Source: Piromyces finnis finn
Lineage: Eukaryota > Fungi > Neocallimastigomycota
Direction of reading: 5' to 3'
Assembly: GCA_002104945.1 (NCBI GenBank)
Contig: MCFH01000019.1
Coordinates: 310,001-374,000, forward strand
DNA: 64,000 nt
The notes below the pieces were generated by a model that was not told the origin of the DNA, searched no databases, and saw only the letters and a list, made by a program, of their open reading frames with translations. Positions within the stretch are counted from its first letter, which is position 1. Each line of letters begins with the position of its first letter. The position numbers and the translations under genes are program-made. This document shows positions 364-55,985 of the stretch, piece after piece.

Positions 364-3300
364 CTTTTTTTATTATATATATTATATTAATTTATATTTT
401 TTTATATATTATTTTTATTTGTTTATTTTTTTTTAAGTAAATCTCCCTTTTTTTATTATTTTTATTATTATTAATTAATTTCTTTTTAGATTCCAAAAAA
501 AAAAAAAAAGGTTCAAAATATTTTTTTAATATTATTTAAAAAAAATTAAAATATAGAAAGGAAATAGGCCTTTATTTATATAATTATGATAAATAAATAT
601 AATTAATAATAATAATAATTTTTTTTTTTTTTAAATATATTTATAATCAATAGAAATGAATATATAAAGTCGTATTATTAAAAGATATTAACAAATATTC
701 ATAAATATTCATGTATATTATATATTAATATATATTAAAATTTAATAGGTAATATTGATTTTTAATTTATATTTTATATTAGAATATATAGTTATAATAA
801 ATTTAATTAAAAATTAATATTTCCAATATATTGTTTGTTCTATATTTTTTTTATACATTTTTAAATAGCATTTCTATTCGTTAACAAATAATTCATTCAT
901 TATAAACTATATTTATAATAAATCATCTAATTTAAAACTATATATTAAAAGTTAAAATATTAATAAAGGGTTTTTTTATTTTATATTAATATTGTATTAC
1001 AAAATAATATAAAAATATATTTAACAAATTAATATGTTATATATTTGTGTAATATATTGATTTATTGATTTATATTAATAATATATTTTTTATGTAATAA
1101 TTATTAAAATAAAATAAATTTATTATTATTTAAAGTTTCAATAAAAATTCTTTAAAAAAAATAATATATATAATTAATATATTTCTATATATATTTCGAT
1201 TAATATATATTATAGTATATATAATTAATATATTCTAATATACAATTTAATTTAAAACTAAAAAATTTTAATTTTTAAAAAGAAAAATTTAAATCTTTTT
1301 GTGTCACCTAGAATAGTAGCACCACCATCATAAATAATAGGAATGAAACAAAAAAAAACAGAAAATTATAATATAAAAATGTGGGTAGTTTTCTTTTTCG
1401 TTTCCCTATACTTTAGGCTTATATGAAAATAAAAGCATCGCAGAACCATCATATTGTAGGATAAAAAAATAATATTTATGGATAAATGAATTCCATTTTA
1501 AATTATAGGTAAATTATGGGAATAGAATCATAATTTATATAACATGCATAGTATTAAATATATTCTTTTCTTTTATATTTAACTTAATATTATTCATTAT
1601 AAATAGTTTTTTTTCTTTTTTAATCTGACATTACTACTTTATAAAATGCATTCTTTTCTTTACTAATTCAATGTTTGCCGTCGTTAAAATCAGTTCTTTT
1701 TTATCAAAATTGTAAAGGATAAGTGAGGATGCTTTATTTTAGGGTTAGATTTAAAGTATATTAAAAGGGGTGGTTTTTTTATTTTTTTTTTTTTTTTGAT
1801 TTAGAAAAAGCCTTTTATGTTATTAATAATACTCTCACATATATTAGAAATAAATGTTAATTTTTAAAATTTCTTAGTATAAAATTTGGTAAACATTATT
1901 AATTATATTTTATATATTTTAAAAAAAACAAATAATTTAATGAAATATATTGCATGATGATTCTTTATAATATATTATTAATTAAAGTTTAAACTTTATA
2001 TTAAATATATATTAATTTTTCTTATTTGTGACACTTTATAAATTGAGCTTAATTTGGTTTTTAATCTTTTACTTACTACAATAAGAAATTTTAATTTTTT
2101 TTTAATTAATTGTAATAAATAGAATAATAAATTTAATTCATTATTTAAATATAAATAAATGGATATAATAAATAAATTTTACTAAGAAAATAAATAGATA
2201 ATTACATAATTTCTAACAGTTTATATTATATTTAAGTGTATAATTAAATAAATTTAATTTATACTTTTTAAATATAAATGGATAATTAGATAAATAACTA
2301 TAAATTTAATATAGAATTTATTTTCCAATAAACATACCAAGAAAAAAAAAAAGAAATTAAACTTTTTTATTTAAAAAACAGTAGATTTTTAATAATTCTA
2401 CCTTTTTTTTTTTAAATAACCACAATAAAATTCTATAGCATTTTAAAACTAACCACCAGTACCACCATCCCATAACAAAATTATACTACAACACCCAGAA
2501 ACATATTTAATCCTACTAATATTTAAAAATTATTCAAAATAATAATACTATTTTAATTAAATAGGATGTAAATATTTTTAAAATAATTCTAATGGCTATT
2601 TTTTGGTTTAGATTGATTCTTTTAGAATATTTTTTTTTTTTGCTGAGTATTATAATCTATATTCTATAATATTATACTTTATTTTATTACATCTTTTTAT
2701 TTTTTTTTATATATATACTTTTTGTCATTATATATAACTTTTTCTTTACACCATTAAAATTAAAATACATATACCTGTATTATCATCCTTGATCATCATC
2801 GTAGGATGTATGATAGACACAAAAGAACAAAGAAGTTATCATCATTAAATATATACATTTATAGTAAATTGTAAATTGATTAGTACTTGAATCGTTTTAC
2901 ATTTGTAAAATTTTAATGTTTTACAAATTTATGACGTCTTTTTGTCCAAAGAATTCAAAATATACAAAGCATGACCTATTATTAATTATGGTTTAAAACA
3001 TATATTAATTAAAAAAAAATGATTAATAATTGTCCTATACAAAATAATATTAAACTTTATCAATAATAATTAACTGATATTTTATAGCCAAAAGTTAAAA
3101 TGCTTTAATTACATTTATGTATAAATTAAGTATTTATAATTTCATACAATGTATTAAATTGTAACATTAATTGTAATATAATAATGTAGAATTAGAATGA
3201 AATTAGAATGGAATTAGAATAGAATTAGAATAGAATTAGTGTTGTCACAATATACATGGTTTCTTTTTTTAACACTCATCAAATATATATATGTATTTAT

Positions 3301-31507: not shown

Positions 31508-31509
<2 letters not shown>

Positions 31510-31539
<30 letters not shown>

Positions 31540-32061
31540 CTTCCATATATCCTCATCTAACCCCCTGAGTTATATATGGTATGTGATTGTACATTATTGT
31601 ACATTGCCATATCAGAACGACGTCGGCACAATCATCCCTCTGGGCAGGGCTAATATGGAATGGCTTATTGCTCTTAACGATCCTATCACACAAAGACCGA
31701 GCTACCAACACCAGTGATCTCCTGAACCTTTATTGGCGAAGGATGATTAACGATGAGAACAACCCTCAAAGACCATAGTTAGTAATCTGTGAATTAATTG
31801 ATACCCCTTCCTACATATACTCTAAACTTCAGTGGGAAAACCGCTTGATACGGAGAAAACTACCAATCTGAATTAACTGCTTAGGGTAGAGTCCGGTGGT
31901 ATAGTTATACTTACCTGAATTGACCTTTAACCCCTATACTTTAAGCGCAAACCTGAAACAGAAAAATCACTAAAGAACTGTCAATTGCGGGGGTCGAACC
32001 AGAAGCCTTATGAATGCTAAGCGGGGGTCTTAACAACCAGGATAGAAACTGGAACTACAAC
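31510..32061 (-). mobile_element. SINE-like non-autonomous retroposon A (about 525 nt plus poly(A))
   Basis: Poly(T) on + at about 31508-31536. 12-bp TSD TTATATACTGTT at 31498-31509 and 32062-32073. GC-rich, no long ORF. Its head is homologous to element B. Confidence 0.85.
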
Positions 32062-32305
32062 TTATATACTGTTAGTGTAGTAGGTTTTGTCAAAGTTTAT
32101 TAATATGATTTAGGATAAAGAACTATTTTTACTATTATTATTACTACATTCATTATAAACTACATATATTTATTGTGGCTTCAATATACAATCTAACACA
32201 ATTCATGTATATACGTTTCAATACATTTGTCATACGTTTCACATATTTTACAAATAATCAATGGACATAGAAACTAACAATTAAATAGAATTATAATATT
32301 ATATA

Positions 32306-32837
32306 GTCGTTCCAGTTTTTATCCTGGTTGTTAAGGCGTTTCCTTAGCATACATAAGGCTTCTGGTTCGACCCCGCAGATGTCAGTGCCTGTGGATTTTC
32401 CCACTGGGTTTGCCATGGGTTGGGTTATGATATTCAGGTAAGTATAAATGAACTTTCTAATTTACTACTATGATAATAACACTCGTCTAGCCGGCCTGAG
32501 AGGGTCTAGTATACATGGTACATTCCAAATTAGAACTTAATAAGTGGTGACTTAGGCTATGCCAAAAACACATAATATTCCTTAATCAATTTAAGTGTAA
32601 ACATTAGGGGGCGGTTGACACGTGATCAAATTGACTATAAGAGGCTTAGCATTGTAGTTGTGAAATATCGTACAACGACATGCATCTAATGTACATGGAT
32701 TAAGTGAGCGTCGAAGCTGAAGAAACAGTATGACAGACCAGGAGGGTCACAACCACCTAGCAATAGGAATGAGCCAACGTTTCTCTAAGAACCACCATTG
32801 GAGCTAACTCTGATCGATGGGAGAAATGCACTCGGAA

Positions 32838-32890
<53 letters not shown>
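32306..32890 (+). mobile_element. SINE-like non-autonomous retroposon B (535 nt plus 50-nt poly(A))
   Basis: 13-bp TSD ATAATATTATATA at 32293-32305 and 32891-32903. B-box-like GGTTCGACCCC at 32364. 39/44 identity (32706-32749) to the LINE 3' end (55907-55950). Confidence 0.88.
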
Positions 32891-32893
<3 letters not shown>

Positions 32894-33095
32894 ATATTAT
32901 ATAATATTATATTATAATTATATATTTGTATATAATTTTGATATTTAAATCTCAAACAAAGATGAAGAGCTAGTTTTTTTTTTCTTTAAATATTAAAAAG
33001 ATATTTTAATAGTAATAGCATTGAAATTATTATAATTTTGATAAATTATAATAATAATAATAACAATAATATCAATAGATAATAGATAAATTAAC

Positions 33096-42579: not shown

Positions 42580-44210
<1,631 letters not shown>

Positions 44211-50687: not shown

Positions 50688-50843
50688 AAAATTTACTACA
50701 GCTACAAATAATTTTATTTAAAAAGTTTCTGTAAAAAAAAAAAAAGGATTTAATAATAATACTTATATACAAGATTTATACTTTTATAAATACGAAATAA
50801 TAAAAAAAAATGTTTTTATTAACAGGAACTTCGTCTATTCAAA
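50688..50843 (+). other. Captured copy of the SIW14 5' region (about 42455-42613)
   Basis: Near-identical to 42455-42613 apart from A-run length. Confidence 0.95.
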
Positions 50844-51259
50844 ACACCATTCTTGACGGTAACCGCGGAACTTCTAACCAAAATCATGCCTTTTGCTATT
50901 GGCCAGCAATGGTCAATGTTCAAAAGGTTTGAAGCAACATCCAAGAGCGTCAATGCTGAAGAAACAGTAAGACAGGCCAGGAGGGCCAGCGCAACCAATG
51001 GAGATCATAATTTTGTTCCATGACAAAATTTTGATCTTTGGCTCGGTGTCCCATTGGAAGTCAAATACAATTATTATACTTTAGTATGATAGTGGCTTTC
51101 TTACTTTAATTAAAATTACTAGAATACATTATACCCAATTTTTATTCATTTGTGTTTATTTAAACATATTTTTTTTTATTTTTATTTTATTTTAATTTTT
51201 ATATTACATGTATTATAATTTTAATTAAATTAATAATAAAGTTTAAAATATTTGATGCC

Positions 51260-51305
<46 letters not shown>
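50844..51305 (+). mobile_element. 5'-truncated copy of the same LINE (3' ~415 nt plus poly(A)) nested in the captured exon
   Basis: Matches 55805-56216 with one substitution in the coding part and a T-run difference. About 33-35 nt of the SIW14 copy (42614-42648) is missing at the site; no TSD. Confidence 0.95.
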
Positions 51306-51307
<2 letters not shown>

Positions 51308-51427
51308 AATAGAAGAGTTAATTCCAATGGAGAATTTTAGTATGATTTGTAAAGGTGTGTATAGAGGAGCATTTCCAAAAAAGAAAAACTTTCCTTTTTT
51401 AAAAAAACTTGGTTTAAGAAGTATATT
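51306..51427 (+). other. Captured copy of the rest of SIW14 exon 1 (42649-42770)
   Basis: 122 nt with 2 substitutions; ends at AGTATATT, exactly where the GTAAGT intron starts in the host gene. Confidence 0.95.
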
Positions 51428-51470
51428 TATTTATTTTATATTCAATATTTTTTAATTAGAATTAATTATC

Positions 51471-54400
51471 ATGTCAGTCCTTTATATTAAAGATAAGAAT
51501 TATATCAGACGTGGTACCCGGTCTTATGGTATCCCCTTAGATGATATTCGCTCCTTCTTTATCCGTGGTATTCGATCATGGTCAGTAAATATGCTATGGG
51601 AAAAACTCGAGGTTATTCTAGAAGATAAATTTAATTCAGTTATTAGTGTTAAATATTTTCAGACTTTCAATGATCACTTTTTCTTAGTCAAGGTTCATGG
51701 TTCATCGAAAGATTGTGTTAAAATCTTACACATGTTAAAGAAGAAACTTTCAGTTACCTCAATTTCCTTTTCAGCTCGTAGTAGAAGGAATCACAAATAC
51801 ACTTTTTCCACACTCAAACGTAAAATTTTAGTTTCTAATAAACATCAACTTTCAATTCAACAATCAGTTCAACAATCAGTTCAACAATCTCATCAACAAT
51901 CCGATCTTCAACAAGATCTTCAACAAGATCTTCAACAAGTTTCCCATCATGAAAATATTCCAGATCTACAGCAAACACAATTTCAATCTCAACATTCAAC
52001 AATTAATTCTAATAGCTCTATCAACTCTGCTAACAGTTCAATAGTTGATAGTTCTTCAGTTTCACAGCCATCTAGTAATAGTTCTACTTATTCCTCTGAT
52101 GCATCATCCATTAATAACGATGACTTTAATAATAATAATAATAGCAACGATTCTTCCTCATCCAACAAGCCTGATAACTTTTCTTTTTGTCTTAGTTGGA
52201 ACACCAATGGGTGGAATCACGAAAAGAGAGATAGTATTAGCTATTTCACAGCTATTTTCAAACCATTATTCTTATGTTTCCAAGAAACTGGTAATGGTTC
52301 TGGTTCGAATACAGATTATCCTTGTCGTGTTACTTTGCGAAACTATAGACACTTTTTCAAGAAAGCTGACGAATCAGTTCCGGGAATGAGAGGTTTATAT
52401 TTAGGTTTTCACAATTCGTGTCAAGCCTCACTTGAAAACTTCTCTGGAAAGTATATTATTTCTATTTATACTTTTAGTCTTTGGAATAGATTCAAATGCT
52501 CGATTGGAAATGTTTATATGTCTCATAGTCATCACAACATCTATGTTGATCATGCAAAGTTAGAAGTTCGCTTGTGGTTACAAACTCATTCATCCCATCC
52601 ATCGATTCTTGTTGATGATTTTAATATGTCTAAAGTAAAATTATCCAACTGGTTATCAACTAATGGATTAGGAGATTGGGAAATTCTTCCGCTTAGAGAG
52701 TCGACTATCTCTTGGACTCGAGGTGATCAATCTTCCGACATTGACCATGCTCTTATCAATTCGAAGATGAAAGATCTTATTCACTCAGGATCATTTATAA
52801 ATAATTTTTATCCTGTATCAGACCATAAGCCACTTCTTATTAATGGTAAAATTATTCCTATGGAAGATTTTTCTAATGACTTTAATGTTCCTAAGAAAAT
52901 TCTGAAATGGAATAGATTAAAATGTATTGAGGAAAAGGAATCTATTCTCAGTCATAATAAATTCCAAATACTTTCAGCAAAATTCAACGATCCTAATGTT
53001 TCTACAGATGAACTTTCCAAAGAGTTTACTTCAACTGCTTTTTCAATTGCAGACGAGCTCAGTATTACCTCAGCAAATAATGTTATAAAGTCTTCATTTC
53101 ATATTTCACAACAAATTTTTAATCTTCAAAAAATCAAAATGAAGTTGTATAAGAGATTTAAAAAAGAAAGAATTTATGATATAGATGAATTTATTAAAAG
53201 AATTAAAATCTACCGTAAGCTCATTGATTACATCCACAAAAGATGTAATGAATTTAGGAAACAAGAATATCTTCATTGGATTAAAACAGGATGTGAGTAT
53301 ATGAAGAGTCATAATCCTAAGAAGGCCTGGAAATGGATCAAGAAAACTGCAAAAATAGGAAAAGATTCTTTCTTTATTGCTCAACCAATTAAAAATAAAA
53401 ATGGAGAATTAGTTGTTGCTACAGAAGAACAACTAGAAGTGTGGCATGATCATTTCGAAAAGCTTGCATCAGATCCAAGTGGTGTAAGTCTTGATTTGGA
53501 GCATTGGTATGAAGAACCAATGAATAAACGTTTTTCACTTCCTATGCTTGATGAGTGGGATATCAACCAAGATATTAGTATTGATGAAGTCAAGTCAGCT
53601 ATCCTCTCTACTCCAAATTATAAAGCATCAGGTCCGGATGGTATTCCAATTGAATTTTACAAAGCATTAATTCCATCAAGTAATGATTCTAATAATGCTA
53701 CAGATAATAATTCTTCCGGTAATACCACTTCAGATAATGATGCTCATGGTTTAAATTTTATTCTTAAATTATTCAACCGTATTTGGGATGGAGACTTCCC
53801 CAACTCATGGAATGAATCCAGTATTGTTTCTATTCCTAAGAAGGGAGATTTGACAGATTGTGATAACTATCGAGGTATATCACTTATCAATAATGGCATT
53901 AAGTTGATTTCCAAAATTGTCACCACTAGAATCTCAGAAAATGGTCTAAAGAATAATTTCATTAGACCTGAACAATTTGGTTTTCGAAAAAAGGAAGAAA
54001 GTATCAGTCTTTTCATTTCAATCCAAGAAATATGCCGTAGACGTCAATTAGATAATAAAGAGACATATTTGGCCTTTTTAGATCTCAGGAAAGCATACGA
54101 TTCAGTCCCAATCGGTAATATTCTCCATAAATTAGATTGTTTAGGAATCCGAGGTAAGAGTTTACAATTTATCAAAAATTTATATTTAACATCTAAGGCT
54201 AATGTCAAATTAGATGGACAATTCTCGAAATCTTTTGATGTGAAGAAAGGAGTCCGTCAAGGATGCCCTCTTTCTCCTATTCTCTTTAATCTCTTTATTA
54301 ATGATATATTTAAAGAGTGCGAAGATCTAGGAGTCAGTTTAGGTGACACTCGATGCTGTGGTGGACTTTTTGCAGATGATATAGTTATTTGTGCTCCAAC

Positions 54401-55985
54401 AAGAGGATGCTTAAAAAAGATGCTAAGAAGAGTTAATGAATGGGCCTTGTATAATGAAATGGAATTTGGTATCCAGAAGTGTTCAACGATGGTGATTCGT
54501 CCTGAATCAATAGAAAATCAGAACAAGAGAGATCCAACATTTTACTTAGCAGGACAACCCATTCCAACTACTGATTGCTATACTTATCTTGGTGTTCCAT
54601 TTGATAAGAATCTGTCCCTTAAACCAGTAATTAAAGCTCTTAATAACAAGGTTTTGAAAGGACTTTTTTCAGTCAGTAAATTCTTAAGAAATCCTAATAT
54701 TCCTATTCCCTTCAAAAAGCTAGTACTTAACTCACAAGTGATTAGCAGAGTTTCATACTTTGCACCATTACTTGGATCCAACAAAGCCAGGTCTAGGATT
54801 GCTCAGAAGCATGTTAACAAAGGAATACGATGGGTTGCCGGAGTTCATAAAGCTGTATCGTTTATATCTTTATACTCTATCTCAAAAGATTTGAATATTC
54901 CTCCATTGTCAGCCAAATGTGCGTTAGCTCAGGTTAGATGTTTTAACAAATGGAAAAACTCAAATTGTATTATCTCATACCTTGTCAATTACATTCCTAA
55001 ATTTAGAAAATACACGTGGTGCAAATCAAGTAGGACACTTGATAAAAAATTAAAGAAACATGGAGATGTTAAAGCAGTTAAAAACTTTTATTGGAAAGAT
55101 CTCAAAGGAAATTCAATCAAAGCGCAATATTATGATGATAATAAATTTATTGAAACTAAAGATTTTATCAAATTATGTTATGAGTACCCAGAGTTTGCCT
55201 ATGGCTTCTACTGGCTCTTGAAAGCAAGAAGCGGATACAAGTTGGATGCTAGAGTTGCCAAAGCTGCTAAATTTGTTGATCCAGTTTGTCCTAACTACTG
55301 TCCATGTTGCAAGTGTGGAGATCAAAGTATTAAACATTGGTTATTAGATTGTCCAACATTTAGAGATATCCGTATTAAACATTATGAATCCATAGTCCAG
55401 CTACTAAATTTTTTCAGTCAACGTAATTCCAATAGTCCTATCAATAATAATGAAAATGTTAATATCAGTAGAGATAGCAATAACATTAATAGTAATAGTA
55501 ACAATAGTAGTAATAACAATAGTAGTAATAGAAATAGTAATAATAACAATAGTAGTAATAGAAATAATAATATTAGTAATGATAACAATAGTGAAGATAA
55601 TAATTCTAATTTAGATAGTAATTTAGTTAATGATAGTAATAGTTCTAATAATCCGGTGAATATTAATGTGTATGATTATTCTAGTGTGTGCAGTAAAATA
55701 TTTAAATTCCTTCTTGGGGGAAGAAGTTTTAACAATATTAATTACAATTCAAGGGAATGGAAAGAACTTTGTAAGCGTCAGATTCAATCTGGTACTAATG
55801 AAGGAACACCATTCTTGACGGTAACCGCGGAACTTCTAACCAAAATCATGCCTTTTGCTATTGGCCAGCAATGGACAATGTTCAAAAGGTTTGAAGCAAC
55901 ATCCAAGAGCGTCAATGCTGAAGAAACAGTAAGACAGGCCAGGAGGGCCAGCGCAACCAATGGAGATCATAATTTTGTTCCATGA
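51471..55985 (+). mobile_element. Non-LTR retrotransposon (LINE), single 1504-aa ORF: putative RRM-like N-terminus, APE endonuclease, reverse transcriptase and CCHC knuckle; 3' UTR and poly(A) extend to 56253
   Basis: APE motifs SWNTNG, FQET, DDFN, IDH and SDHKP. RT motifs GPDGIP, NYRGISL, QFGFR, DLRKAYDSV, GVRQGCPLSP, FADD and YTYLG. CPCC..H..C near the C-terminus. Clade not determined (RTE-like single-ORF layout). Confidence 0.95.

Follow-up and report, generated by a model that had tools for sequence, protein, structure and literature searches.

Two SINE families of Piromyces finnis share a conserved 16-nucleotide block with an exact 11-nucleotide complement to U1 snRNA

Genomic context and identity of the elements

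The window, a 64,000-nucleotide stretch of the Piromyces finnis genome (contig MCFH01000019.1, positions 310,001 to 374,000), contains two short retroposons arranged head to head and, further downstream, a LINE whose open reading frame (51471-55985) encodes a reverse transcriptase domain. The other open reading frames of the window belong to ordinary host genes, among them an ABC transporter, a kinase, TAF4 and spermidine synthase. The features relevant here are listed below; a slash within a sequence or between two positions marks an exon/intron-type boundary.

31508..31536, minus strand: poly(A) tail of SINE B, which reads as T on the plus strand
31537..32058, minus strand: body of SINE family B, with young and older copies in the genome
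31905..31920, minus strand: 16-mer of SINE B, boundary at 31915/31914
31990..32058, minus strand: shared 5' head block of SINE B
32294-32305 and 32892-32903: target-site duplication of SINE A, TAATATTATATA
32306..32840, plus strand: body of SINE family A, starting exactly at GTCGTTCCAG, with the same 5' end beside target-site duplications in about 50 copies
32306..32374, plus strand: shared 5' head block of SINE A with the B-box-like motif GGTTCGACCCC, 87-88% identical to family B
32432..32447, plus strand: 16-mer of SINE A, donor-like CAG/GTAAGTAT, boundary at 32437/32438
32706..32749, plus strand: segment of SINE A common to the LINE 3' UTR (41 nt at 90%)
32841..32891, plus strand: poly(A) tail of SINE A
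51426..51470, plus strand: stretch just downstream of the LINE 5'-UTR acceptor, fused here to a copied host first exon (51306-51425)

The SINE bodies span ~535 nt (A) and ~520 nt (B), with no open reading frame longer than 63 aa, and their 5' blocks form a 69-nt inverted repeat at 87% identity (31990-32058 / 32306-32374). Measured from the 5' end to the donor-like boundary, the head of SINE A is 132 nt long (32306-32437), as initially annotated, while that of SINE B, put at 147 nt, is 144 nt counted from GTAGTTCC at 32058 and reaches 147 nt only with three additional 5' bases.

We searched the whole genome (56,455,805 bases in 232 contigs, ~20% G+C), and all copy counts given here are lower bounds. 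Family A has more than 200 copies that are 98-100% identical; in a set of about 50, nearly all start at GTCGTTCCAG and are accompanied by target-site duplications of 10-15 nt and A tails of 10-130 nt. Family B comprises ~23 young copies at 97-99% identity as well as older copies at 70-88%, and the head block conserved in the SINEs has at least 227 matches. Both are real SINEs: short, non-coding, present in many copies, with target-site duplications, poly(A) and a defined 5' end. In the literature that we searched, we found no description of SINEs or of the 16-mer in Neocallimastigomycota.

The shared head folds into a cloverleaf-like structure that includes the B-box-like motif, with no match to an A box. 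It was not called as a tRNA by ARAGORN and had no match in Rfam, either at the gathering threshold or at E up to 10. An origin of the head from a tRNA is plausible given its fold and B-box-like motif. At the other end of the element, the segment shared with the 3' UTR of the LINE (32706..32749) suggests that this LINE is the likely partner of SINE A; family B has no corresponding BLAST match. Directly before poly(A), both SINE families carry GGAAGT(T/CT) (32835-32840 in A; 31537-31545, minus strand, in B), perhaps as a short 3' recognition motif that they share, perhaps by chance; the LINE 3' end, GATGCCGTT, is different. One SINE A copy (L099; G000:C150:542100-542800, minus strand) has the first 110 nt of the head three times in tandem (GTCGTTCC...GGGTTTGCCA) ahead of a normal head end and donor, an arrangement that resembles the tandem 5' monomers of some LINEs.

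A site of maximal complementarity to U1

The window contains two exact copies of the 16-mer ATTCAGGTAAGTATAA, at 32432-32447 (plus strand) and 31905-31920 (minus strand), and no further site is found there even with two mismatches allowed, which bears out the initial annotation in its observation that the two elements are identical in this block. Genome-wide, at least 262 sites match with at most one mismatch, as against 4 for a reversed control. An Rfam search for U1 returned two genes above the cut-off in this genome, both starting with ATACTTACCTG, and CAGGTAAGTAT, recognized from the outset as an exact complement of the U1 5' end, is therefore a true 11/11 complement of the fungus's own U1 snRNA. 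This perfect 11-mer is present at least 259 times in the genome (34 for the control). Among the first 100 listed, ~92 coincide with the SINE 16-mer, and by extension from these 100 about nine-tenths of the 259 sit in SINEs. Taken together, these comparisons strongly indicate that the 16-mer is a predicted site of maximal strength for the U1 snRNA of this organism.

Host splice donors probably reach 11/11 complementarity rarely, if ever. One host donor could be read in the window, ATATT/GTAAGTATT. The hexamer GTAAGT is not enriched there (17 occurrences, 47 for a control hexamer), and a host donor consensus from the window was abandoned, 17 being too few to define one. In the minimum-energy fold of either head, the 16-mer is left unpaired. 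A common RNA structure around it was considered and rejected, as the folds differ between families (z of -2.45 for A and +1.13 for B).

A similar donor at the end of the LINE leader

The canonical leader of the LINE is ~235 nt long and ends in GATAYTCAG/GTAAGTTTG. It is followed by ~500 A+T-rich bases of 5' UTR and then by an acceptor, TTATTAG/, located ~45 nt before the ATG. About 218 LINE leaders in the genome carry the donor, in two variants, and the donor region of SINE A has 16 nt in common with that of the LINE leader (TGATATTCAGGTAAGT). The leader (in L062 and at other loci) also contains the motif CTCATGGTACTGAG twice, ~110 nt apart, and a perfect TACTAAC lies within the 5'-UTR intron, ~180 nt ahead of the acceptor in use.

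The LINE copy in the window is without the donor-bearing leader. In its place, the copied first exon of a host gene is fused to the LINE acceptor; the original of this exon lies at ~42650-42770 and ends in ...TATATT/GTAAGTATT. As read from this junction, the LINE acceptor has worked in vivo at least once, with a host donor. Directly upstream of the chimera is a 5'-truncated LINE 3' fragment with poly(A) (50843-51305), so that two LINE insertions follow each other in tandem here.

Conservation between source lineages

Comparison of A with the B consensus gives 58 of 66 identical positions in the 5' block (88%), 28 of 73 in the middle segment (38%), 16 of 16 in the 16-mer (100%) and 22 of 60 in the columns that follow it (37%); by BLAST, the families resemble each other only in the 5' block and in the 16-mer. 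The initial account, in which the block is identical and its flanks have diverged, is thus accurate for A against B. The 16-mer is less apt as a unit within family B, where the constrained block is ~50 nt long and takes in a further ~14 nt on the 5' side of the 16-mer and ~25 nt on its 3' side.

A wider alignment was built from five lineages: A, young B (B1), old B (B2), a divergent B-type copy (L041) and a metagenomic relative (L103). Here AGGTAAGTATAA is the only long run that is invariant throughout, preserved on a par with the promoter-like blocks of the alignment. The run reaches 2 nt past the U1 footprint (+9 and +10), and position -3 is T in the metagenomic relative. Judged from these alignments, the 16-mer is conserved best within the 5' module that the two SINE families have in common, and it is mirrored at the end of the LINE leader.

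Cross-species evidence comes from a single metagenomic contig, L103 (Ga0138317_1043819, 36% GC), the one true relative found in a metagenome scan with a 20-nt head block. It has the same head, a donor region reading TAG/GTAAGTATAACTATA and a B-like body. Next to it lies a Snf7 gene whose protein shares 86-94% identity with the P. finnis (G000) orthologue, and the contig is therefore from a different but related fungus. Several features of this contig are unusual. A 5S rRNA gene (1176-1294, minus strand; 106.9 bits in Rfam) precedes the SINE-like element (1159 downwards), from which its end is separated by 16 nt that hold no T-run terminator, and the element is without poly(A) and abuts the stop codon of the convergent Snf7 gene. 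The Snf7 reading frame is intronless where that of P. finnis has introns, and the contig may therefore be cDNA-derived or come from an intron-poor relative. We considered whether L103 represents a conserved RNA gene locus and rejected this, the orthologous Snf7 locus of P. finnis having neither a 5S gene nor a SINE. The B-type copy L041 (G000:C1:2463430-2463844, minus strand) retains its first 19 nt and the donor block perfectly and is the only copy that is missing the whole B-box region; it ends in 17 A and is flanked by a short target-site duplication. A propagating subfamily of this type would argue against Pol III, but L041 is a singleton in the genome and therefore uninformative as to the need for a promoter.

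Decay of the motif at the rate of its flanks, together with a lack of spliced reads, had been named initially as evidence against a selected U1 site. In old inserted B copies (L091-L095) the 16-mer has accumulated 1-4 substitutions, predominantly G to A; these copies do decay at about the flank rate, while the source lineages keep the 16-mer. Inserted copies are dead, and neutral decay is therefore to be expected of them whatever happens in source copies; the relevant comparison is the one between source lineages. There the U1 complement is kept far better than its flanks, which fits the selection proposed in the initial annotation, with U1 itself as the putative ligand. Given this conservation and the ~218 LINE leaders with a similar donor, it is likely that selection on source copies keeps the site and that inserted copies decay neutrally.

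Alternatively, the shared stretch could have no function and simply not yet have diverged, SINE A, SINE B and the LINE leader having acquired it through modular assembly, template switching or gene conversion. The elements are indeed mosaics, with a shared 5' block on different bodies and one copy bearing three tandem partial heads, and 16 of 16 identities would not be extreme were the local rate that of the 5' block (0.88^16, ~0.13). However, both flanks of the 16-mer are at background similarity (38% and 37%), the core is kept in the relative from another species and in all B subfamilies, and the LINE retains it in two leader subfamilies. We consider this explanation quite improbable.

It is also conceivable that the block is conserved for a reason other than U1, as a binding site for a LINE protein or RNP, an internal promoter or an RNA structure required for mobilization, with the U1 match being incidental. 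The length of the constrained block in family B and the 2-nt offset between the invariant run and the U1 footprint would both fit, as would the presence of the same motif in the partner LINE leader, as expected of a shared recognition element; a TATAA-like stretch in the block would suit an internal promoter. Against this, the motif has no conserved pairing partner that we could find and stays single-stranded in both folds; the LINE has only the donor core in common with the SINEs and not its flanks; a chance 11/11 complement to U1 in three element families is unlikely; and the leaderless LINE copy in the window was still retrotransposed. On balance such a reason seems unlikely to account for the block.

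The genomic record of splicing

A donor of this strength might simply be spliced, the head serving as a first exon joined to an acceptor within the SINE or downstream in a host gene or LINE, with the genome recording only the RNA that remained unspliced. The perfect complement to U1 is what a working donor would show. Candidate sequences for the remainder of an intron are also present: in SINE A, TTCTAAT is followed by TCTAG, which lies 53 nt after the GT, and all B copies keep TTACTAAC followed by TTTGAG. The element start, TTCCAG, is acceptor-like, so that head and donor could act as a cassette exon, and the LINE acceptor has been used in vivo by a host donor.

We scanned the genomic record for spliced retrocopies using short junction patterns of up to 28 nt. 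Neither the A head, represented by its last 16-17 nt, nor the B head has a genomic match in which the next base is anything but G. Two matches were returned when the A head pattern was extended by G and a base other than T, and both carry the same point change of GT to GA. The initial annotation had proposed the head as a leader exon; among ~230 heads, none precedes anything but GT, apart from these two point mutants. Its further suggestion of splicing onto the LINE 5' end fares no better, there being no junction in the genome of a head or LINE leader to the LINE acceptor. One apparent junction of this kind (L098) proved to be an old LINE with its intron in place and a TATCAG acceptor. The LINE leader followed by a non-G base has four matches among ~218, three of which are point mutants at +1. 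In the fourth (G000:C216:154564-154581, minus strand) the leader has T instead of G after CAG; it fits neither a +1 point mutant nor the known acceptor junction and is the one match that might reflect splicing or rearrangement of the leader.

The two donor-killing changes are identical (CAGGAAAGT; G000:C156:814103-814130 and G000:C157:619047-619074), which suggests that the two copies belong to a small subfamily or lie in a duplicated segment. If these copies do form a subfamily, a source copy without the donor could still propagate.

Since spliced copies are lacking, the RNA templates that were copied are, by this record, unspliced at the donor, which argues against the 53-nt mini-intron, at least in retrotransposed RNA. 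The candidate branch and acceptor sequences (at 53 nt in A; TACTAAC at ~150 nt in B) are in addition not conserved across A, B and the metagenomic relative. The absence of intron-less or exon-joined copies among ~230 heads, the absence of head-to-LINE or leader-to-LINE acceptor junctions, and an 11-bp U1 duplex stronger than host donors use all weigh against a working splice donor, which we regard as unlikely. Two related identities were tried and rejected. A spliced-leader RNA is at odds with a head of 132-147 nt, with the absence of the Sm-type sequence AATTTTTGG after the donor and with the absence of head-joined sequences from the genome; in an introner-type element, the donor would not be internal (+133/+145) nor the 3' end a poly(A).

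Which polymerase transcribes the SINEs

Runs of five T in the heads had been taken in the initial annotation to argue for transcription by Pol II. This argument is weak: the T5 at +93 in the SINE B copy of the window is a private change, the B consensus having T4 runs only, and the T5 at +11 of family A, which also has a T4 at +91, is specific to that family. The metagenomic relative has two T5 runs, and no run reaches T6 in any lineage checked. The B-box-like motif in turn hints at Pol III. If the SINEs are Pol III transcripts, co-transcriptional functions of U1 would not apply to them.

A possible role for U1 without splicing

With only somewhat less than even confidence, we hypothesize that the 16-mer is a docking site for U1 that acts without productive splicing. 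U1 snRNP would dock on the element RNA ~130-250 nt from its 5' end and mark the transcript as mRNA-like; once docked, it would guard against early termination or premature cleavage and polyadenylation in a genome of 80% A+T, and might hold the unspliced RNA in the nucleus as a template for retrotransposition, the full-length unspliced RNA being the form that would be copied. Maximal complementarity to U1 is typical of sites at which U1 acts without splicing, such as retroviral leader donors. Telescripting by U1 is established in animals, and we know of no demonstration of it in fungi. It is likewise established in plants (PMC11489095). Against docking by U1, the constraint in family B, as read from the alignments, is longer than U1 would need; the 2 nt by which the invariant run exceeds the U1 footprint and the T at position -3 of the metagenomic relative also count against it.

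The leader donor of retroviruses provides the closest parallel. In HIV-1, for example, U1 bound at this donor suppresses the promoter-proximal poly(A) site and stabilizes unspliced genomic RNA. As in the SINEs and the LINE, a strong U1 site lies within a few hundred nt of the 5' end, and the unspliced RNA is the template for replication. Retroviruses also make subgenomic mRNAs from the donor, however, whereas the P. finnis elements have left no spliced product in the genomic record; in addition, the latter are non-LTR elements, and one class is non-coding.

Human LINE-1 likewise resembles the P. finnis LINE in having a 5'-UTR donor with an acceptor upstream of the ORF. Its splice sites are weak and incidental, and spliced copies (SpIREs) are found. 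These illustrate that a spliced, chimeric RNA can be retrotransposed, comparable to the host-exon/LINE copy in the window. In contrast, the P. finnis LINE donor is near-perfect, conserved and shared with SINEs, and at most one self-spliced candidate was found among ~218 leaders.

Short blocks shared by SINE families with differing bodies and tails are familiar from the central domains of SINE superfamilies (CORE, V, Deu, Ceph and others), which are kept by selection on source copies and have no proven function. The P. finnis block differs in being only 12-16 nt long, in its position at the junction of head and body, and in having a candidate ligand, U1 snRNA. SVA and other composite retroposons trap exons by splicing, with SVA acceptors capturing upstream exons, and splice signals thus shape chimeric copies in SVA as in the P. 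finnis elements. The SINEs described here, by contrast, carry a donor and show no captured sequence. Like them, SVA is non-autonomous and mobilized by a LINE (PMC3287187).

It is tempting to go further and to speculate that the LINE and SINEs of this early-diverging fungus use splicing-free U1 binding of maximal affinity as a form of RNA licensing, through antitermination and/or nuclear retention of the template, or else that the ~230 heads, dispersed only recently, are mobile promoter and first-exon cassettes spliced into downstream host genes; on the sequences at hand, we would give this broader proposal a low probability. Should U1 docking prove to be the selected function, these elements would clearly exemplify how non-LTR retroposons, a non-coding SINE among them, can exploit a function of U1 that is independent of splicing, and U1-dependent protection of transcripts would extend to fungi with extremely A+T-rich genomes. 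The ~230 very young SINE copies, which hold about nine-tenths of the perfect U1 sites as estimated from the first 100 listed, are a likely source of aberrant or new splicing and termination events in host genes, as well as of gene-model errors in this biotechnologically used fungus.
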